Positions 20,879-46,341 of a stretch of 64,000 bases of DNA are shown here, piece after piece (position 1 is the stretch's first letter; the number at the start of each line of letters is the position of its first letter). This DNA is from Pavona decussata. Its lineage: Eukaryota. Below the pieces are notes generated by a model. That model worked only from the letters and a program-made list of their open reading frames with translations. It made no database searches and was not told where the DNA came from. Made by a program: the position numbers and the translations under genes. Where the stretch lies: positions 434,001 to 498,000 of the forward strand of contig CDRNST010000191.1 of assembly GCA_977016875.1 (NCBI GenBank), in the 5' to 3' direction.

Positions 20879-21008
20879 NNNNNNNNNNNNNNNNNNNNNN
20901 NNNNNNNNNNNNNNNNNNNNNNNNNNNNNNNNNNNNNNNNNNNNNNNNNNNNNNNNNNNNNNNNNNNNNNNNNNNNNNNNNNNNNNNNNNNNNNNNNNNN
21001 NNNNNNNN
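20879..21008. other. Assembly gap (130 N)
   Basis: Run of N. Confidence 1.
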
Positions 21009-32141: not shown

Positions 32142-35100
32142 ATGAAGTTGACGAGGTCTGGATACGGCTCAAAAGCCTTATTAGTGCTTATTTGCCTTGG
32201 AATACAGCACGGACTCTTAGACGCCAAAGGTAAATACGAGTTTTATCGACTGATGCCTTACACATTGATTTAATTCAATTAGCAAGTTTACTGACTATGT
32301 TGATTCCCTCTCTTACTATAGCCCGCTATAGCCCACATTTGATTTATTTTAAAGCATAAGAATTTAATTTAAGGAAAAATGTAAAATAACACGGCCAAAG
32401 CTAACGCGGATCTGTACGGAGCGTTTGTCTACGTTCAGTGAAGCGGGGATTTTTGTCATGCAGGATTTCATCGAGTATTGTGAGATTCATTGTTCTACCG
32501 ATCAAATTTTTCTTTTCGTTGTTTTAAATATTTTATGAAGGTAGTTAAACCGTGTTTTGAAGGAACAACACCTGTTTTTGTTGAAAAGTCTTGGGGAGCG
32601 TCACCTGTTCCCGCCTAAATTTTTTTCAAAAACATTAAACAGTTTCATCTCCAAAAGCATCGGAAACGAGCAAAAAAGTTTTATTTGTATTTCCAGTTTC
32701 AAATCGAAAAACAAAAATTAAGCACCAAGTAATTGTAGTGCTCAATTGCTTCTTCTTTAAGATTGCACATGATAACGCGCTCAAAACTTATTATTGTTTT
32801 CAAGAGTCATTGTATCCAAAGTGCAATTTGTCAAATCGCTCAGTTAGGACTTGTACTTGATCAAAAGGTCCTGTTGACTTCATGAGAATTGTTGTATTAC
32901 CAGTACTGTTATTTATTTGAATATGTTGTCCAGTGCTTTTCCAATTTCGACATCAGGGCCAAAAGAACCTGGCCCTGAGGACGAACACTGGCGAGAGACG
33001 ACGAAAATTAACGAGAGTTGGCGAAAACCTTATGGTATGAAGACCTATAAGAGTGTACGATCGTTCATGATCAAGACTTTCAAACCAAACAAGAGAGGAA
33101 ATTTCAGCTTCCATCCATTCCAATACTGAAATAAGACAGATGAGAGCATAACGATTTCCGGTCAGAGCAAAACGAGAGATATTGAAACCCACTAAACCAG
33201 AGTACAAGAGCCTGAACTATCGACAGCTCTCTCTACTGATACCCCAGTTTCAGCTGTTTCTGAGCACCGCATTGATCACGAAAATTACAAGGGTACTTGT
33301 TCACTCGTTAGGGGGCATTTCTTTTTCAGACAAGCACCTGCGCATTTTCAATAAAAACATAAAGTAAAGACGTTTATATATTTTTGCCGTTATTGAATGT
33401 AATATTATTAAATGTATTAAAGGTGATTTTTAGCTTGCCTATTTATTTCTATTCTACTGGCTACAACACCGGTTTGTATGGTTAATGTGGATTTTATTGT
33501 ATGAATGAGTCTAGGTCTAGAGATTCTTGTGAACATCAGATTATTTTACTTTGATTTCTTTTCTTCTATAGCCATCAAGAAATCAAAACATGGTGTTCAT
33601 AAAAGTGGAAGTAAAAAGAACAATGGTAATTGTGAACCCATGTCTATCAGCAAATACCCTCAACATTTTATCTTGTATCCAGGGTCTTATTTTAGAGGGG
33701 GATGAGGCGGGTAATTGGGGATAGAGCGTTTATTCCTGATTTGATATGAGCATTTGACAATGCCAAAGCAAAAGCGAGTCCCTATAGCTATCTATCCACC
33801 TCATCCCGTCTGAAATAAATCCGTTGATCAGAAGTAGATTTGAGTTGAAACAGCCACGAAAAACTCTTAAGAATTCTCAGTTTGAAAGAACACGTTAATA
33901 GCCCATTTTACAGTTGTGTGCTAAGTGACCTGGTCTTGAATTGAAAGCGAGACTGGGGTTGACCTTGTTTTGATACAAACCTCACTGCTTTTCATATGTA
34001 GATCACACTGTTCTTATGCTAACTAGTTTGCATTTACATATGAAAAGCAGTGAGGTCTGTATCAAAACAAGGTCAACCCCAGCCTCGCTTCCAATTCAAG
34101 ACCAGGTCACTAAGCACACAACTGTAAAATGGCCTGTTAAGCGGAAAATTTAGGTAGCTTCTGAAAACATAACAACTTAATTGCTCTTCAACTTTTATGC
34201 GTTACTTTCTGAATATAACTTCTAAGGACGCAACGTAGTTTTTCCCCAAAATGTTAGTCACTTCACTTGTTTTGCTATTAGAAAGGAATCATCTCACTTG
34301 AGAACATTTGCTCGTGAACTAGACGCTATTGGTATTATCGACATTGAACTTGGACTAGCTGAAACGATTCTCCCATGAAAGCCTCGTTTGCGGGCTAATT
34401 CCAGTTCAATAAGGAAAATATGAATACGGTCTATTAAAAGTGGTGTAAGGAAGATATCACGGCCTATTAAGCACCCTGGTTGATCTTTGATATCCCGATT
34501 TTCACAGCTCCAAAAGGCAACTTCTGTGTGAACCACTCGTACTGCGTCAAATACAGTGATCTGGACTGCGCTTCAGAATGGGTTCAATTGAATTGTCCCA
34601 GGATGTGCAGGCTCTGCGAATACGAGGGTGAGTAGTAACGCACGCTTGATACACCGTAAGCTTGCAAGCAAACCAAACTGGTCAAAGACCAAGAAAATAG
34701 ATATGGAAATACTGTCTGGCATATGGTCAAAATTTTGGGAGAAAAAAATTAGAGTGGAGACATAAGCAGTAGGTAAAATCAGTAAACGGAATAGCCAATG
34801 GATATGTTTGAATTATTTATTTTTTTAAATTTGTCTTTTATTAATTTCTATTCTCATTTGTGATAATTATACGGATACCAATTTACAATTTGATTTAAAA
34901 ATAGTAAACGCTAATAAAGCTGTGCATACATTTCGTTGCAAAAAAGATTCACAACGCACTTCCAAATAAATATGATGAATACGGTAAGAATACATCTATA
35001 AGTTACTCATCACTACAAACTTGCCTCGTTTCAGAATATGATTGTATTTTATCGTATAATTAGATTGAGCAATTTTCATTTCCATGTTGAAATAAACTGA

Positions 35101-38100
35101 TAACCTTTCATTTTCGATGGTATAACTGACGCTCTCCTAAACGTAGGGGCCGACATTATGAAGCTTCCAGCAGTCCTGTACTTCAAGCAGGGAAACAAGA
35201 AGCATGGAATCTCTGGCAAGAAACTGAAACCCAAGAGCAAACACGCGTCCAAAGCTAAAGTTGTTGAGAAGCGAGACGAGGGAGATAGACGAGACGTGGT
35301 CTTCCTCAACAAGCCATACGATTATGCTCCTACAAAGCAGTCCCCTACCACCACTTACAACTTGTTTGACTACAAAAGCAATTACAGAAACTGGCTTTTC
35401 CTGTATCCCGACGAGCACCCCGTCCATATGCGATATGTTGACCAGGGGAAAAAGGCCGATACTAATCAGCAAACAGCTGGACAGCAGCAGGCTGGTGCTA
35501 CTCAGGATGCTGCTGGAGCTCCAGTGGCTGCCGCTGGTGCTGCTGCACCCATGGTAGCTCCTGCTGCCGCTGCTGCAGCTCAGCCAGCTGCACCCGTTGC
35601 AACAGCCCCTGTAGCTCCTGCTGTGGCTCAGCCAGCTGCACCCGCAGCAGCTGCTCCAGCTACTGCCGCTGCTCCAGTAGTACCTCAAGTAGAACAGGCT
35701 GCAGCAGCACCAGTCGCAGCTCAACAACCCGTGGCAGCTGCTGAGCAGCCATTGGCTGGTGCCCAAGCAGCATTCACAAATCAGGCACCGGTAGCCACCC
35801 CTGTTGCTGAAAACCAGACCATCGAGCTAATCAATCAAACAGTTTCCTTGGCAACCAACAAGACCCAGCAACCAGTTGTCGGAGTTGGCGCGGTCGGCTT
35901 TGAACCAACTGTTGCCAATGTGACTCAGACAAGTCAGGCGGTTACGGACGGAGCTACTGTGCAGGGATTTGAGGCAGGAAACAGTAACTCTAACAAGACT
36001 GTCGCTGCAGGTAATGATCGATCTAACATTCGTTTTCTGTTTATTTCGCTGTCTCAAACAATTAGGTCTTACCTTAGTTCTACGCCATTACAGATCATTT
36101 GATTCATCATTACATTTCCTCGACATCATTTGTTTAAGCACCTTTATCAGGAACTAAAAGACAGGATAATTGAGTCTATTTTCTTGAGAAAACTTCGACA
36201 GGCCTTTCAACTGATTGCAGTATGATACCTTTTAAAAATCATTAAGAATGGAAGCAATCGAGAATGAATCGTAGCAAAGAAAAACCCAATCGCATAATTT
36301 TCATGGTGAAGTTAATGACTTGTAAGGATATTTGTCCAGAAACGTGTCTTAAACACTCAACAAAAGGGAGTCTTCATGAAGTAAATCTGAATAAAATATG
36401 TGAAATTCCAAAGGTTTTACTTCAAGAACAACTGGTAACTTAATTTTCTAAAAAAACCTCTGAAGTCTTATTTAGGAAAGGGGTTGGGGGTGTGGGGTTA
36501 TCGGCAACGGAAGGAATAAAAGGTCGGCTATTGAAACAATCTTGTTTTATATGAATAAAGCGAATCCACAAATGCTCATGTTTTTCTTACACAAGGTAAC
36601 ATCACATCACAAAATCAATCTCAATCACTGGACGAAACACAAACATTCTTCATCCATCAGCCAAACTCATCCAAACCACTTGCACAATTGCAATCCGAAG
36701 CGCAGACACAATCACAAGCAACACAACTGCAATCACTTGATGCATCAATGCTGCATCACGAGGAAGCATCCATGGTAGAATCATTGAACACATCACCTCC
36801 CCGTCCTCCTCCGCTACCATCTTCACTACACGCGTCATCAGAGGAGGTAACGTCTCAAAATACACTTCATGTTGATAACACGGATGCGTCCAGTGAAATG
36901 CACGGGAATCTTAACCCTAATGCTGCGAGTGTGACTTTGTCTGGCCCAGGTACCGTGGATCTCACAACAACTGGCCAGAGCTTTACTCAGGATGTCATGG
37001 TTGATTCTGATGGTGCTGCCCAGACACCCTGGACATGCTGTAAAAATGTGAAGCCACCCAAGGATTGCAAACCCTGTCCCAAGCTTCCCAAGGCCCCGCC
37101 AAGTGAGTATAACACAACTAAAAATTCTCCCTTTTACCCTTTACTACGATGTCGAAAATGTGGCTTTAAATGCCACTGTTGTTCTTTCAAGACTCATTCA
37201 TTGCTTTTCCTCTTGTGTTTTTTAGTGCCTTATGTGTTCAACCTCTACTGTGATGACGTGTACAAGGACTGTGCTTATGGATACTCCAACTGCAATGACA
37301 CCTGGTGGCAGATTAACTGTCCCAAAACATGTGACCTGTGCAAAGGTAATGACTATTTCTTCCTGCTTGTGTGCGCCATAAAACCTATGTAAAATCTTTC
37401 ACCCTGAATCCAATTTTCACTTTACCAACAGTCTGTCTAGTTTAGAGGTACGAGGTCAAAATACACACAACATATTAACTGGCAGTATGACTCTATGAGG
37501 GATACTTAGTCACTACTTAATTTCACTTGACAGGGAGACTGTTATAAACTTTGAATTTCTTCGAATAAAGGCCGATTTTTGCTGTAGAGAAACAACGCAA
37601 TAGCATCCACCCAGTTTCTTGGCGGCTGTTTCAGCCGTTCAGTAAATCGATTGGTTTGTATAGCGGGACTCCAGTCCTAGTGCGACAACAAAGCGAACTG
37701 ATATGACGCTAAAAAGGTGCGAGGAGGAAGTACAGTCTTTGCTTTGGTATTCACAGATGCATTTTAAGACCATAATGTGATTCGAAGGGCTACGTTCGTT
37801 TCGGACCTGTCTCCATTACCAAAAGGCTAGGGGTCTTAACGTAACGTGTACCGTAAGGTCGACTTGTCGGCGATCCGTGTGCAAGATTCGTAGACCACAA
37901 CTTCGAATACCGCCAAGAGCCAAGGGAAATTATAATAACAATTTGTCAACTGCTAGTAACAAAGTAGAATTGCTCGATAGAACTTCGTCAACTGTGACTA
38001 CAAAGCAAAAATAAGTTTAAAAAAAATAATTAAAGCAGAACAAAACAGGTCAAGACAAAAGGAAGTGATACTACAATGGAACGCCAACGATACAAAAACA

Positions 38101-40186
38101 CACAAAGGGAAATTCTGTCAATGAAACAAACTCATGTTTATAAATATCGCAAAATTATAATTTCCAGCAAAGGACAAAGTAAAAGCGCCAACGACCAAGC
38201 AAATTTTACCAAAGGAGGTAAAGGACCTTGAAAACTCAGAGCTGGAATCGGATCTGGTTGCACCCGTTCCTGGAGACAAGCCCCTGGTTGCTAAGTACAC
38301 CTTGCGAGTTAAGCCCAAACTTCTGAATGGTGTGCCTCAAATGCAGGAGATCCGCATTATGCCTCCGAACAAGTCTGGAGCTTCAGGATTTGTTAAACCA
38401 CTCATGGTTTTGAAACAGAACATCACAAAGCCTATGATCGAGAATATCGAGATTGACGTGCCAAAGAAAGGAGCGAAGTTCAGCCGTAAACCGAGTGTGG
38501 AGGTGATTGAAGGTGATCGCAAAGAAATGCTGCAAGTCCACAAAGGACAGGCAATAGTAGAGGACCCTGCAATACAAAAGTCAAATACGGAAACTGAAGG
38601 TATGTCGGGAACTGACTAAAACAAGCAATGAATTTACTCGAATAAACGCATATTCACACGTGACAAATGAAATTAATGCTTGTTGGAAAGTCGATTAACG
38701 CTAAGCTGAGATTAAATGTAAAGCCGGATGCTGTTCGTGTTCAAGAGTACGGGCCTTATTTTGGCCGAAATGTTTTTCCGGTTAATAGGGTAAAATGAAA
38801 CTCTGAAATAGTAAGCAGCATGCATTGAATATCTGAAAAGGCATGCAATCTCCTATATCTCAAGAATAGACTTTTATCGGGTTTTTCTTTTTGTTGTTGT
38901 TTCTGCTTCCTAAAAAAGGAACATCTTTATCGAGAAAACCACCTTCACCTAGGGTGCTCAAAAATACGAATCCTTAAAAAGATAGAAAAGAATAAACCGA
39001 TGAAAATAATTAAATTAAGAGTCTGCGCCATAGCTCCAATGGTATTGAATTGTCTAGTATGAGCACTGTTTAGCTTCACGCAAGTAATACAGTGGAAACC
39101 TACCTTAAAGCTATCGCCCTCTCTAAGGAGAGAATCAGGTCATTACTTTAACAGGGGCCGTTACTGTCAGGATTTACAATCAACCGTCAAATTTAATCAC
39201 TAATTTAAGCGCTCGGTTATCATTAGTTATTGTTGCTGTGCAAACATTACGGTACTTTTCTCTCAAATGTTATTAGCACCCCAGGAAACCCAGCCTGTAA
39301 ATGAGGCAGAAGATGCAACAGTACAATCCTCCTCAACACCGGCAGCCCAACAAAACATAGCAACAACCACGATAGAGCAGACTCAGTCCTCCCCTGCCAC
39401 CACAACCGAGCAGGACTCAGCCACTCAAACTTCTACAGATCAGACCCAGTCCTCCGCAGAAACATCCACAGCTCAGACTCAGTCCACCCCTACCAAAGAA
39501 TCTTCCACAGCTCAGACCCAGTCTATCCCCACCACTGAAACCTCCACAGCGCAGACGCAGTCCACCCCCACCACAGAAACTTCGACAGCTCAAACCCAGT
39601 CTACCCCCGCCACAGAAACCTCTGCCCAGAGCACAGCATCATATTACCCAGATACTCAGTACCAGTCCTCTGTTGCTGCTCCAGCTGCACAGACTGCTGC
39701 CTATAGCAACAGTAAGTTTGTTATTTTGATTAAATTCCTTACCTCCTCCCTTACCTCTTCTAAAAAATGCTTCACTTATTTTTTGGCTTTGGTCACACGG
39801 ACTCAACAATGCAGAGCTTAGAATACCCCAAATACAAGAAAATTAACAATATCTTAACACTCTACAACAGCCCCTCTAGGATACAATTTACTGATTCTTG
39901 TCATAGACATAGCTTTTATGGGGAAACTTTTTAATTAAAATGTTTTGAGTGAACGAATGGGCTATGGCGACAATCCGGTATGGCAGTTAGTGGTTGTTTT
40001 AGGAGGGCTGTTAAGGCTGTTGCCCATCCAACCCTTCATTGTAATTCTTGCTCGACCAATCTTTTTGTTGTTGTTCTTGTAGCCGAGACTTGCTCTGATG
40101 ACAGTAGATGTGAAACATACACTGAAAACCAATGCGCAAATGCCTGGCTAATGGAGAACTGCAAAAGCAAGTGTAAACTGTGCTAA
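32142..40186 (+). CDS. Gene C: large secreted multi-ShKT mucin-like protein (~933 aa, 10 coding exons)
   Basis: Exons 32142-32229 (MKLTRSGYGSKALLVLICLGIQHGLLDAK, signal peptide), 32957-33034, 33572-33625, 34508-34627 (ShKT CVNHSYCVKYSDLDCASEWVQLNCPRMCRLC), 35147-36010 (Lys-rich, Tyr-rich, Ala/Pro/Gln-rich), 36596-37102, 37226-37345 (ShKT CDDVYKDCAYGYSNCNDTWWQINCPKTCDLC), 38168-38599, 39277-39711 (T/S/Q repeats) and 40083-40186 (ShKT CSDDSRCETYTENQCANAWLMENCKSKCKLC, stop). All introns are phase 1 GT-AG. 3'UTR intron 40194-40525; AATAAA 40974. Confidence 0.8.
33897..34138. mobile_element. Palindromic MITE (~100-bp arms) in a gene C intron
   Basis: ccattttacagttgtgtgct...ttttcatatgta is mirrored almost perfectly by tacatatgaaaag...gcacacaactgtaaaatgg. 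Confidence 0.8.
39459..39629 (+). repeat. Coding tandem repeat, 39 bp/13 aa x~4.4 (ETSTAQTQSTPTT) in gene C
   Basis: Units start at 39459, 39498, 39537, 39576 and 39615. Confidence 0.85.
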
Positions 40187-42084
40187 GATAAAGGTAAGAA
40201 ATGCTTTGTATTGATAAAATGAGACGGAAACACTCTTGGCGTATTCAGGAGGGGTGAGTATAAAGTGGCTGTGAAAACAAGGAATTTCATAAATTCATGA
40301 ACCATAATACGACTTAGCTAGGAAAATCAATTTTGAGTAACGACTTAAAATCATGTGTCGTTCCGGTAACAACTTTCAAATGAAACAGCTGCAAACATGT
40401 AAAAGAAAAGGAAGGAACAGGTATTGTAGTGGATAGGTGGCGAGAGGGAATAGGTACAAGGAATTGAGGACAGCCTTGAAAATCAAGTCAATATAGTAAC
40501 CGATATATTTTCTATTCTTTTCCAGGTTTCTGATGCTATAATTAACAACTCAAAGATGACAACTGGGGTCACGTGACTCGTCAGCATTAAGAGTGGTCTC
40601 TATACTGAGTGTAGATAACACCAACTTAACAAAGAGTCAATACTCGATGCCAATTGAGAACTGTATACACTTTGGGTTTATGATTTGGTTGAAAAAAAAT
40701 TCACTTATGAATTAATTGTTCTACTTCGATTCGGCTATCTTCAGGGAGCTGTTTGTAGTATATTTTCTCAATCTTAGGTGTTAGATAAAACAGCTATTTA
40801 TTTTAGTATAGCAAGTATTTCATGTAAGATGTATGAAACTCAGTTTAGTGATTAAGCAGATGTAGCAGAGATAAGGTAATCAAAGCACAAGTCAGTTTTA
40901 TGTACATGCTGTGCCTATCGCTCTTGTATTTCAAAACTATTTCTTTTCTTGTGAAATGCATGAGCATTCTTTAAATAAAGATCGTCCTGTAAAAGTTGTG
41001 GCTCATTTTACTCTATTTTACTCGCTCCACCAAGAGAAAGTGGACTAATGTTAAGACCAACAAGCAATGCATACAACCAACTCGATATTTGTTGTGGGAG
41101 AAACACTCTTGAAGCAGTATGAACATTTGATATTTTGCTATGACTGTTTGTTTATTCAAGAACTGAGCATGCTCCATATGTTTCTCGAACGTTCTGTTAC
41201 AATAATGTTTCGTGACGTAGGGACAATAGAACAAGTTTTATACTGGACAAATAGGTTACCTTTTTTAGAAAAATCTTTGGATTATATAAGCAGCCGCATT
41301 TCTCCAGTTCTCTCTCCTTTTTCGTCGGTCATCGATCTGTTACGGAGTTCTCTTAAGATTTGCTCGTAAATAAACTAAAAGTTGTGTTTGCAGACTTGGG
41401 GAGCTCTTTGCATGTTCTATAACGGTTATTTTTTAGAAGTAATCGGTTATTTCCGTAGTGTTTGGTTCATGGCAAGCGCATGCGCTACTGCACCAACACA
41501 AGTGGCGTGTGTATCGGTAAATATCGTGTTTGAATATTATTGGTTCGATCACACGGGTCACATTAAATTGACGTATGATCAACATCCAACTTCTCCTGAA
41601 AGCCTTACATAAAACTTCTGCAGTTGTGTTACAGCGAACATGGTTTGAAAAACGACGTTTTGTTTTATTTTCGCATATCACCTGCTTTTGTTCGTAAAAA
41701 AATGGATTCTATTTTTTAAGGTCCGGTTGAGAAATGAATCCACAGCTTGCCATATTAAATTTCCAAGAAATACCCCAAAAATCTCATTACTTTGCTAATG
41801 TATTTTTATTTCTCGAGAAAAAGGTCACCCAAACAAAAATAAACTGGTAGTCATGATTTCATCGAAAGGACTCACAGTTAATTAGTTAATGTCTTCAGTT
41901 AGTCCGGAAGGCTTGAAAATTTAACCTGTCGAGTTAGAGCTGTATCTACACTCTTCGTCAGCCGTTAAAAATTTGCGACGAGGCTCGATTTCATCGGAGT
42001 AAAATTAGGTTTACTCTCAGCACACTAACATTTCTACCAACAAAAGTCAGGTCAGATTTCTAAATAGGACATACGTAATATACG

Positions 42085-42094
42085 TATATATAGA
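42085..42094 (+). promoter_or_regulatory. Putative TATA box of gene D
   Basis: TATATATAGA ~180 bp upstream of the ATG at 42269. Confidence 0.45.
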
Positions 42095-42268
42095 AAGCAC
42101 AGTGCGGGTCTTTAAAGCATCTATCAAGCATTGTTTTCCAGCTCATTAGGCAGAAAGGTCACCAGTTAAAGCTTCCTAGCATTTTCTTGACCTTACGTGT
42201 GTAAGGGCGCTTTTGAAGAGGCAATACATTACTCAAACACAGAGCGTTCCGTCAGTTTCCTTTTAAAC

Positions 42269-45200
42269 ATGTTGAAATTCGTAGTGTTTGTCGTGTGCCT
42301 GTCGGTAATTGAGGGAAGAACTTTTCATATACTCATTCAAGGTAAGTTGTGATAATTGTTTTAGTTTACAATTTAGAAAGTCAAAATAATTAGGACAAGA
42401 AAGCAAAACATATATTTAACGGGCAGTATTGAAACTATAACCTTATTAAAACGATGATCGCTGTGAACTAAAATGTTAATTGGTTGTCAGTAGCTAGAGC
42501 GATTTTAACCTCTCGAGAAGGGAAGACAGAATCAGAAATAGGTTGGAATTTGAAACTTACGAGTTTCTTCTTTTATAAGAATGGGGGTAAAGGGACCATG
42601 TAAAACATGGATTCAAATCTAACTAAGATGGGAAGCAAAATATTTGAATAGCCTATAATTGAGTGAATAAAGACCTGTTTAAATAGAGTTCCTTGCTCAA
42701 CAAAAAGAAAACGGGCTTGCTTGCGGCCGCAATGAAATCACCTCTGTTTCTACCCAGTTTTGTTTTTAATTGTTCTTCAAGTGATAAGAGTGAAGATGAT
42801 TCTGAAAATTAACTCGATTTGTAGAAAAATAGGCGCTTTTTTGTTCGAGAATGAAAGACAATTTTTATAAAAGGATTTAAAATACGAAGGCCTGAAGTTG
42901 TTTCGAATTGGAAGCTAATGGTTCACACAAAGAACATTCCATGCATTGTTCTTTCACCGTTTTACTTAATAACTGGCCATGCGTGTCTGCCTTCATGTGA
43001 TCACCTGTTATGCAATTGTTTTCAACCTTTTAATCCACTTCAAGTCTACAATGAGAATTATAAATAAATACCATTTATACAAATTATGGTTAGACAGACA
43101 GCACAGTGCTACTCGTCACCTTCATTTGAATGCTGCGAATGTTTGGTTTTATCACCAAATTTCGCCATCGTAAAGAGATTCGAGTGATAACGTTTCGAGC
43201 GTTAGCCCTTCGTCAGAGCTTCGTCAGAATCCGAATTCGCTGTGACGAAGGGCTAACGCTCAAAAAGTCAGCACTCGAATCTCTTTATGGTGGCCAGATT
43301 ACCTTGACGCTATTGATAAAAACAAATATTCGGTTCCACTCCCCACAGACGCAGTCGTCCAATAGTACAGCTTTTATAATCAGGTCGGTTTTAATTAAAG
43401 GCTGGGGTGATGAGACTCAGGCCCAAACCCAGACCTGAAGGACCAGAGTTTTCCAATCGAGGTTTCCTTCCTCTTAGCCATGGGTATCACTGAGGTATTT
43501 TAAGGCGCCTCTAAGATCACGGGGCTGTTTACTCATGTTCATGTTCAGTGTTGATCACGTAGGAATTTAAAGTATTCGGCTCCCACTGTATTTTGGCAAA
43601 GGGTAGGGCACGGAGTTCCCGGATTTATGGTCTGACCTTATAAACATGTCATTGTTGGGTGGACGATAGGCGATTGGATAACTGCCTATACCCAGAAAAA
43701 CATGGTTAGAAAAACCAACATCTCAGCGGCACACTCTGCCAGGGATGGCAAACCTGACAGAAACGTCAGACGAAAAATTAATGTAAATTAAGACAAAAAG
43801 ACAAGGAAAACATTTGCGACACTTGTTAATCTCAGTGAGACCTATTAGCCGTGCTAGGCTCCAAGTAAATCAATTTTAAGACAGGCTAACTGCTTTTGAT
43901 TAAATTTCAATCTTACATTGAAGGTAAAAAAACATTTCAACTTGTCTATGAAATTCTTAATCCATCTGCCTGTTTTCTTTTCACAGATCCAGTCGCTAAC
44001 GTGACCGGTTCAAATGATCAAAATGCAACAGCGAGTAAGCTTAACGATGCTCCGGAGAAAGATGCTCCGGAGATTTCCGAGATGCAGTCGGACTTGGTCG
44101 CCCCTGCTTCGGGACCCCAACCGCTAGAAGCAAAGTATACCATCCGAGTCAAGCCGAAGTTGAAAGACGGTGTCCCACAGGTCCAGGAGATTCGCATCAT
44201 GCCACCAAAGAGTAACACCACCATCAAAGGTTTTGTCAAACCTCTGATGGTCCTTAAACAAAATGTCACGAGACCCTTGATTGAAAATATTGAGATTGAT
44301 GTGCCGGAGAAGGGACAGAAGTACGCCAGCACGCCGAGTGTAGAGGTAGTCGAGGGCGATCATAGAGAACTACTGCAGGTTACTAAAGGGCCTGAGGCAG
44401 TCATTGAAAATGCATCACAGAAGTCGGAAACCAAACCTGAAGGTATGATCTTGTGTTTTGACAGAAAGTTGTTGGGTACAATCCACTGTAACACAGCTCA
44501 AGTATCATGGGGATTTTGATTTTGGTGAGAATGGTGCTACAACATCTTCAATTAGTCACAAAATAATTCTAGAACACCAAGAAAAAAAAACAACTGAATT
44601 CTTGAAAAGAACAACTCATGACCTGCTCTAGTGCATTTTGGACGAAAACGCGAGAACTTGAAAACAGTTTTTCAAGATATAGTCCATTGTAACCCAGTCC
44701 TGATCTGTGGCAAGAGACACTCATCGGTAGTCTTGGTACACTGGTTCCCAGTGTTAACACTGTATACTTGGTTGAGTTTGTTGTTGGTTCTCGTCCTTGC
44801 TCTAAGGGTTTTTCTCCGGGTACTTCGGTTTTCCTCCCTGCACAAAAACCAACATTTCAAAATTCCAATTCGACCAGTAGACGAAAGAGCCACTTTTTTG
44901 AAGCCACTGAAATTCCCATTTTTTTTTTAATTTTTATTTTATTTAAAGCCAAAGAGGAAAGTTCCTCTCAGGATTCAACAGAACAATCGGCCTCTAAGAA
45001 TGCAACACAATCATCAACCTCCGAGAAAGCAGTAGAAACATCGACTTCCCCTAACGCAACGAAGCAAGCAACCTCTCAGGATGCAACCCAATCTTCCACT
45101 TCCCAGAGTTCAGTAGAATCATCGACCTCCCAGAATGCAACACAGCCATCGGCTTCTCAGGAAGCAACAAAGACATCAACGTCAAATGACGCAACAGCAA

Positions 45201-46341
45201 AGAAGCCCGCAACTTCATCACAAACTCCAGCGGCTTCTGAGAGTACAGCCAGTGCCCAGCCCCAGACCCCTGCTCAGGCTTCTCCGCCCGCTCAAGCTTA
45301 CGCGCAACCCACTGCGACAGCGGTAGCTTACAACAGTGGTGAGTAAAAAGTCCTAAGGGAAGAGGAGGCGAGGGGAGGGTTGGATGGTCCTTCTTGGAAT
45401 TTTTCGCAGCAGTTTGTTGATAAATTTTAAATGTCAATTTACTATTTCAAGCTTAAGTCCTGGCTAAAGGTATTTTATACCGGTTTTTTACACTTGACCT
45501 CACGGTTATTTCGGTTATTAAAAAATTTGTTTCTAGATTTTTCGTCTTTCATAAAATCTTACCTGCTCTTCCCTCTTCTTTTCTCCGCATAGACTGCACA
45601 CACTGAAGATGGGTTATATACCCGAAACGTCTGTGTTTCTTTGGAAACCATTTTTGACACTTTTTGATAATTATTTTTATATCAATCCTATCCGTAGACT
45701 GCATAATGTCTGATATGAAAGGGAATATATTTGGACTGCGGAGAAAAGATTTAATTACACTACAGTTATGTATGCAACTTGAGCAATTGCGAAATGAAAA
45801 CCTGAAAAAAACTTCCCTCTGCAGTTTAAGTTTACGATTTTTCAGATATTCACTTTCTATTCATCTTCCGCAGGTTCATTACGACCTCACAAATGACCCG
45901 CTCCCAGTTGGTTTGATAGCTCGGTTGGTAGAGCACTGCACCAGTATCGCAAATCCCGTTGAAGCTTAATTTTTACAGGCTTTCTTTTCCCAAATGTTTT
46001 CGCTCTCTCGGAGAGAAACTAGTGTCCCTTACTCACTGTTTTACCATCTCCCAACTCCTGTTGTTTAAACAATTTTTTTTCTTGCCACGGAGTTCACGAC
46101 AGGAGTCTACTTGGTAGTTAATACAATTATCTGTTCGGCAATTCGCCTCTCACATTACCAGAGTACCAGAGGCGGTAATTTTTCACATATTTTAGTCTTA
46201 AAAATGTCTAACTTTTTTTCACCCACAGTTCCTGAAACTTGTACCGATGACGGCAGATGCCAAATTTACCCTGCCGACCGCTGCAGAGAACAATGGCTTA
46301 TGTCCAACTGCAGGCTCAAGTGCGGACTTTGTTCAAACTAA
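42269..46341 (+). CDS. Gene D: secreted protein with unassigned ~100-aa domain, Ser/Thr repeat linker and C-terminal ShKT (~343 aa); paralogue of the 3' part of gene C
   Basis: Exons 42269-42341 (MLKFVVFVVCLSVIEGRTFHILIQ, signal peptide), 43987-44442, 44949-45338 and 46229-46341 (ShKT CTDDGRCQIYPADRCREQWLMSNCRLKCGLC). Phase-1 GT-AG introns. The exons correspond one-to-one to 38168-38599, 39277-39711 and 40083-40186. Confidence 0.85.
43172..43286. repeat. Inverted pair of degenerate hammerhead-like motifs (Penelope-type repeat)
   Basis: Minus strand CTGACGA-A-GGGC-TAAC-GCTC-GAAACGTT; plus strand GTGACGAAGGGCTAACGCTCAAAAAGTC. The arms are reverse-complementary (aaagagattcgagtg / cactcgaatctcttt). 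Confidence 0.6.
44769..44930 (+). mobile_element. SINE body with V-domain-like core
   Basis: gggtttttctccgggtacttcggttttcctccc resembles the conserved V-SINE core; T-rich tail. Confidence 0.55.
45598..45636 (+). ncRNA. Minimal type I hammerhead ribozyme motif (Penelope-like element type)
   Basis: ACACA-CTGAAGA-T-GGGT-TATAT-ACCC-GAAA-CGTC-TGTGT. Conserved CUGANGA/GAAA core, stem I ACACA/TGTGT, stem II GGGT/ACCC, palindromic ACGT stem III and GUC cleavage triplet. Confidence 0.7.
45888..45982 (+). mobile_element. tRNA-derived repeat, B box deleted
   Basis: tagctcggttggtagagcactgcacc (A box/D-arm) is followed directly by aatcccgtt. Confidence 0.55.

Follow-up and report, generated by a model that had tools for sequence, protein, structure and literature searches.

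Secreted glycoprotein layers serve corals and sea anemones in feeding, in defence and in their symbiosis with microbes, and in stony corals they also provide the interface with the skeleton; the majority of their proteins have no annotation. Domains that are confined to one lineage and have no known function are no rarity, and the described systems closest to the one considered here are of three kinds: the Ig/FN3-like accessory sandwiches of secreted mosaic proteins, the cnidarian mosaic proteins that carry ShK-like domains, and the SEA domain, the classical neighbour of O-glycosylated mucin segments, which has an alpha/beta fold and a G/SVVV motif for autoproteolysis. Here we describe a cysteine-free domain of about 100 residues that is encoded twice, in two neighbouring genes designated C and D, within 64,000 nucleotides of the stony coral Pavona decussata (assembly GCA_977016875.1, contig CDRNST010000191.1, positions 434,001 to 498,000 of the forward strand). 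This whole stretch is called the window below, and positions within it are counted from its first letter. We propose, with a probability of about 0.7, that this is an undescribed extracellular beta domain restricted to Anthozoa, which belongs to secreted mosaic proteins and whose two forms, C and D, go back to a tandem duplication in stony corals. Gene structures were obtained by mapping database proteins onto the window with tblastn and by reading the splice sites, and the searches were run on single exons or on database proteins.

Two constrained copies and their anthozoan relatives

On sequence comparison, C and D are paralogous copies of one domain. Their open frames are identical at 84 of 127 residues (66%, with 83% positives; BLASTP E 9e-56), and over 121 aligned codons the first, second and third positions are 74%, 82% and 40% identical, respectively. 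Across the same codons the proportion of synonymous differences (pS) is 0.79, which is beyond saturation, and the nonsynonymous divergence (dN) is 0.25; when the two exons are aligned together with some 300 flanking bases at either end, the similarity is confined to the coding part and the flanks are unalignable. Saturated synonymous sites, unalignable flanks and low dN together form the signature of long-term purifying selection, and the ratio of nonsynonymous to synonymous divergence (omega) against the orthologue L004 is far below 1 for the domain, at 0.067, as compared with 0.20 for the linker of the same exon. An initial annotation, made from the letters alone, had described a protein kept under purifying selection despite many synonymous changes, between linkers and introns that cannot be aligned, and these measurements bear it out. 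Its position for copy D, 44079–44390, is exact, but the start that it gave for copy C, 38240, is off by one base: a frame opened there runs into stop codons, and the open frame begins at 38239.

The domain core comprises about 99 residues and, as the same annotation had it, is devoid of cysteine, which holds for both copies and for every homologue; it also lacks tryptophan and is rich in Lys, Val, Pro and Ile (11% Pro, 11–14% Lys). The invariant or nearly invariant positions of the alignment are chiefly prolines at strand ends and one Lys-Gln pair, and conservation is spread evenly over the roughly 100 residues, not gathered in short motifs. The N-x-T sequon that had been reported as kept between the copies is indeed present, as N-[IV]-T, in all scleractinian sequences, but it is absent from the sea-anemone and octocoral homologues.

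In the Pavona genome (602 Mb in 1180 contigs) the domain occurs only as C and D, and a whole-genome search with a profile of the octocoral subtype returned the same two copies and none further. Close relatives were recovered from ENA/Logan assemblies by a word-indexed search as 40 exon-sized open reading frames (ORFs) at 62–95% identity, none of them with a Pfam domain. A single profile iteration over 1.84 billion representative proteins gave 27 matches at E <= 0.001, one of which (P0057) is probably a spurious repeat protein; those that could be named by cluster look-up come from Acropora palmata, A. millepora, A. muricata, Nematostella vectensis, Actinostola and Xenia sp., all of them anthozoan, and nothing from outside Anthozoa was among the matches. 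Judged from these searches, the domain is so far found only in Anthozoa, where it extends through both Hexacorallia and Octocorallia, that is, through stony corals, sea anemones and octocorals. The host proteins are already in public databases, as “uncharacterized” proteins in Acropora and Xenia and as a “hypothetical” one in Actinostola, and it is the domain that is undescribed in the libraries searched. Two Nematostella vectensis entries, P0044 (XP_032236476) and P0063 (XP_032236475), are named “mediator of RNA polymerase II transcription subunit 15” and “paternally-expressed gene 3 protein”, names that are probably artefacts of Gln-rich low complexity; both proteins are of secreted type, with a signal peptide and ShK-like domains.

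In a maximum-likelihood tree the octocoral and the hexacoral sequences form two clades, each supported at 100/100; the C (83/83) and D (94/94) clades are nested above Nematostella, Actinostola and one further lineage, which dates the C/D duplication to the stem of the stony corals. A third subtype (P0053–P0056, P0058 and P0068) is about 35–45% identical. The tandem order C-D is kept in a contig of another species, L003; the second tandem copy there (L003:17297-17662) is about equidistant from the two window copies, at 63% identity to C and 60% to D, and appears to be a fast-evolving copy of D type.

Family searches and predicted structure

Neither copy, and neither whole exon, found a family in Pfam-A at E up to 1, and running 36 members of the family against Pfam at E up to 10 yielded only scattered chance matches (Thi4 in four members, best E 0.033). 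Against the PDB (phmmer/hmmsearch), a single sequence reached at best E 0.19, to designed proteins, and a profile of alignment A5 had no match at E up to 10. Feature matches in the ESM Atlas, to hypothetical proteins and to ubiquitin-like and TP_0789/DUF4292 clusters, scored 0.83–0.84 at best, lay within the range of shuffled sequences and were rejected. With no match from Foldseek or VIA-align either, the earlier statement that the domain could be placed in no known family stands for all of these resources. A candidate identity for gene C, the Acropora “Threonine-rich protein” of the skeletal matrix, is reported to be restricted to certain scleractinian families (PMC6824150) and was set aside on that description of its range, the present domain being Anthozoa-wide.

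AlphaFold2, supplied with a 36-sequence anthozoan alignment (A6) for the segment 38236–38598, returned a model without helices, with a predicted local distance difference test score (pLDDT) of 78.4 and a predicted template modeling (pTM) score of 0.64. It has seven predicted strands, at residues 4–8, 17–25, 36–42, 57–62, 67–75, 88–92 and 95–99 of the segment, with pLDDT of at least 50 over residues 1–111 and below 50 in the last ten residues only, and the mean pLDDT exceeded 70 in four of the five models of the run. A second run, on stony-coral sequences only, also gave strands and no helix, and the two predictions thus agree with the all-beta fold that had been suggested from alternating hydrophobic residues. 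Searched against the PDB with Foldseek, the A6 model found nothing with E below 0.67, and a shape search of the Atlas gave template modeling (TM) scores of at most 0.42, which leaves a beta-rich model with no convincing structural neighbour. Almost all of the weak neighbours that did come up are accessory sandwiches of Ig/FN3-like type, from GH2 and GH3 domains, the C-terminal domain of PrkC, Brr2 Sec63 and the FN3 of phage GpJ, which hints at the general class but does not amount to membership.

Architecture of the host genes

The two genes share a common plan (Table 1). Each begins with a signal-peptide exon, and these, with the signal peptides of the full-length homologues, point to the extracellular location given in the initial annotation. 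The domain is contained, as that annotation also stated, in a single phase 1-1 exon, with a polypyrimidine-AG acceptor and a GTATG donor in both genes; the exon starts with a non-conserved linker, of about 22 codons in C and about 30 in D, where the linker holds N-glycosylation sequons, and is conserved from there to its end. In gene C its frame is continuous with that of the ShK-like exon before it, which ends at 37345; the join is the same in Acropora XP_074626433. Downstream of the domain both genes continue with Ser/Thr-rich and then ShK-like exons, and its placement upstream of a mucin-like stalk and an ShKT domain is accordingly right as to order, but “stalk” is a loose term, no membrane anchor having been seen. 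The terminal exons match Pfam ShK weakly (14.5 bits for C and 12.6 for D, with a cut-off of 20.9), and the internal ShK-like domain of the Nematostella homologue passes that cut-off at 23.2 bits. Across the two genes (32142–46341) every intron phase that can be read is 1, as would be expected if the genes had been assembled by shuffling exons for extracellular modules. Elsewhere in the window there is a run of 130 N at 20879–21008, a gap or a masked stretch.

Table 1. Exons of genes C and D and the two domain copies, in window positions
Feature	Position	Strand	Evidence
Gene C exon 1: start codon and signal peptide, phase-1 donor	32142–32229	+	tblastn to residues 1–30 of Acropora P0043
Gene C first ShK-like exon, phase 1-1	34508–34627	+	93% identical to P0043 residues 46–88
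Gene C middle exons: Ala/Pro/Gln-rich low complexity and second ShK-like domain, phase-1 donor at 37345	35143–37345	+	
Gene C domain exon, 432 nt, phase 1-1	38168–38599	+	AG acceptor, GTATGT donor
Copy C of the cysteine-free domain	38239–38547	+	translation; BLASTP against copy D
Gene C Thr/Ser/Gln-rich (mucin-like) exon, phase 1-1	39277–39711	+	
Gene C terminal exon: ShK-like domain ending at last Cys, then TAA	40083–40186	+	tblastn to P0043, 67% identity
Gene D exon 1: start codon and signal peptide, phase-1 donor	42269–42341	+	resembles N-termini of P0041 and P0042
Gene D domain exon, 456 nt, phase 1-1	43987–44442	+	AG acceptor, GTATGA donor; aligns to D-type P0041 and P0042
Copy D of the cysteine-free domain	44079–44390	+	translation equals the initially annotated peptide; BLASTP and codon comparison with copy C
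Gene D Ser/Thr-rich (mucin-like) exon, phase 1-1	44949–45338	+	weak tblastn match to P0041
Gene D terminal exon: six-Cys ShK-like domain, then stop	46229–46341	+	tblastn to P0041, 69% identity

Full-length homologues show both layouts. Those of D type (P0041 and P0042) consist of a signal peptide, the domain, a Ser/Thr/Ala-rich region and an ShK-like domain, and that of C type (P0043, 685 aa) of a signal peptide, an ShK-like domain, a low-complexity region, a second ShK-like domain, the domain itself, a Thr-rich region and a final ShK-like domain; the sea-anemone proteins P0044/P0063 and P0045 have a C-like layout with a Gln-rich region. Xenia is organized differently. At the P0058 locus (L008:8001-10980) the domain lies within one exon of 1191 nt (L008:8218-9408) together with Ser/Thr-rich N-terminal and Gln-rich regions, which makes the symmetrical single-domain exon a hexacoral or stony-coral feature, and the same gene goes on to encode an internal ShK-like domain followed by VWC (36 bits) and FN2 (Pfam fn2, 56.7 bits). 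The window, too, has exons for VWC and FN2, at 58211–58396 and 59641–59838 and with 63% and 52% identity to P0058, about 12 kb downstream of gene D, which closes with a stop codon before them; the arrangement suggests that one gene was split in hexacorals or that two were fused in octocorals, and that microsynteny is conserved. Downstream of P0058, the neighbouring Xenia gene (L008:16346-18980, with a 3404-aa product) starts with two ShK-like matches, VWC and FN2 and goes on with many TSP1 repeats, which indicates a local cluster of related matrix genes. In the octocoral-type sequences P0053, P0054, P0055 and P0066, the ORFs end, after a Gln/Gly-rich region, in a conserved Q-R-R-x-V-x-A-P motif, which could be a dibasic processing site or merely a conserved exon end.

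Proposed role, rival readings and described counterparts

In the model we favour, the domain is predicted to fold autonomously into a seven-stranded all-beta module. In its secreted host proteins it comes after the signal peptide, in some of them with ShK-like domains and low-complexity regions in between, and before a Ser/Thr/Gln-rich, presumably O-glycosylated segment at whose end stands a six-Cys ShK-like domain; in stony corals a single ancestral gene gave rise, by tandem duplication, to the long C type and the short D type. As to its role, the domain may be a docking unit that binds or assembles non-covalently at one end of the glycosylated rod, with the ShK-like domain at the other, and the two could anchor or cross-link the rod in the animal's secreted glycoprotein coat, be it mucus, glycocalyx or matrix. 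This role is something that we only infer. That the domain is a genuinely new fold, one that goes back more than 500 million years to the stem of Anthozoa and is the docking unit that defines an Anthozoa-specific secreted glycoprotein system of surface mucus or matrix, is a bolder version that we regard as doubtful.

Several results weigh against the favoured reading. With stony-coral sequences only, the AlphaFold2 model, although it has six strands, reaches a pLDDT of just 52.7, and in a homodimer run the ESMFold2 pLDDT stayed under 50; given this poor model from a shallow alignment and the low ESMFold2 value, the fold rests on one alignment-dependent prediction. The homodimer score itself, 0.00 with the fold of the partner uncertain, counts neither for nor against self-association. 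The best Z in the fold comparison was 3.3, where 7–8 is usual for models without a clear match, and so low a value may mean that the topology is unusual or wrong, and not that the fold is new. A core with no tryptophan, two to three aromatic residues and 11% Pro is, moreover, atypical of a compact beta sandwich. The restriction to Anthozoa depends on a large profile search of one iteration, beyond which remoter relatives in other lineages may exist, and as to function, a literature search with the family accessions, gene identifiers and peptides found no paper mentioning them.

The first of the alternatives takes the weak structural neighbours at their word: the domain may be a very divergent member of the Ig/FN3-like beta sandwiches, and hence a known fold with a new sequence family, serving as an accessory module of extracellular mosaic proteins. 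This is a possible reading, held tentatively, and it is compatible with a selected, Anthozoa-restricted module of secreted proteins that is predicted to be all-beta. The low confidence of the shallow-alignment and dimer runs, the absence of structural neighbours, the scarcity of aromatics and the alternation of hydrophobic and polar residues in strands split by invariant prolines would also suit a segment that is extended and non-autonomous and that forms strands only once it is bound to a partner or paired with strands of other molecules, as in a fibril-like or cross-beta glycoprotein assembly. Such a segment would hardly be expected to reach the pLDDT of 78 and pTM of 0.64 that the broad alignment gives, with the mean above 70 in most of the models, or to be conserved evenly along its whole length, and we consider this explanation unlikely.

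It is more improbable still that the domain is the pro-region, or an intramolecular chaperone, of a precursor from which proteolysis frees the C-terminal ShK-like peptide as the active product. The terminal ShK-like domain does end at its last cysteine or two residues past it, in the manner of mature ShK-type peptides, and the octocoral homologues have their conserved QRR-x-V-x-AP motif after the domain. In the hexacoral proteins, however, the stretch from the Ser/Thr-rich segment to the ShK-like domain is free of dibasic sites, the ShK-like domain of Xenia is internal, being followed by VWC and FN2, and a glycosylated spacer of 100–400 residues is, to our knowledge, unlike known toxin precursors.

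The domain is an old, strongly constrained building block of secreted-layer proteins, confined to Anthozoa, and its points of note are its age, the strength of the constraint, the lack of a structural neighbour and its setting in coral secretions that are poorly understood. It may also contribute a fold to which no solved structure comes close. Naming the family would correct the “uncharacterized” entries as well as the “Mediator subunit 15” and “PEG3” annotations of Nematostella, which is a tractable target because it has a single gene.

Compared with the described systems, the domain is like the Ig/FN3-like accessory sandwiches, such as the FN3-like domain of GH3 glucosidases and the Ig-like C-terminal domain of PrkC, in its length of about 100 residues, its predicted seven-stranded all-beta structure and its use as a module of a secreted mosaic protein, encoded in stony corals by a symmetrical phase 1-1 exon. 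It resembles the SEA domain in adjoining a Ser/Thr-rich, presumably O-glycosylated segment, in a size of about 100–120 residues and in being free of cysteine, but differs from it in having no helix in either model, no match to Pfam SEA and no G/S-V-V-V cleavage motif in the alignment. The host proteins are akin to the cnidarian ShK-like mosaic secreted proteins, since they carry one to three six-Cys ShK-like domains, each in a phase-1 exon of its own. The cysteine-free module itself is unrelated to ShKT, its core having no cysteine in any member and the ShK-like domains occupying separate, neighbouring exons, and between genes C and D it is the better conserved of the two, at 66% identity against 45–55% for the terminal ShK-like exons.

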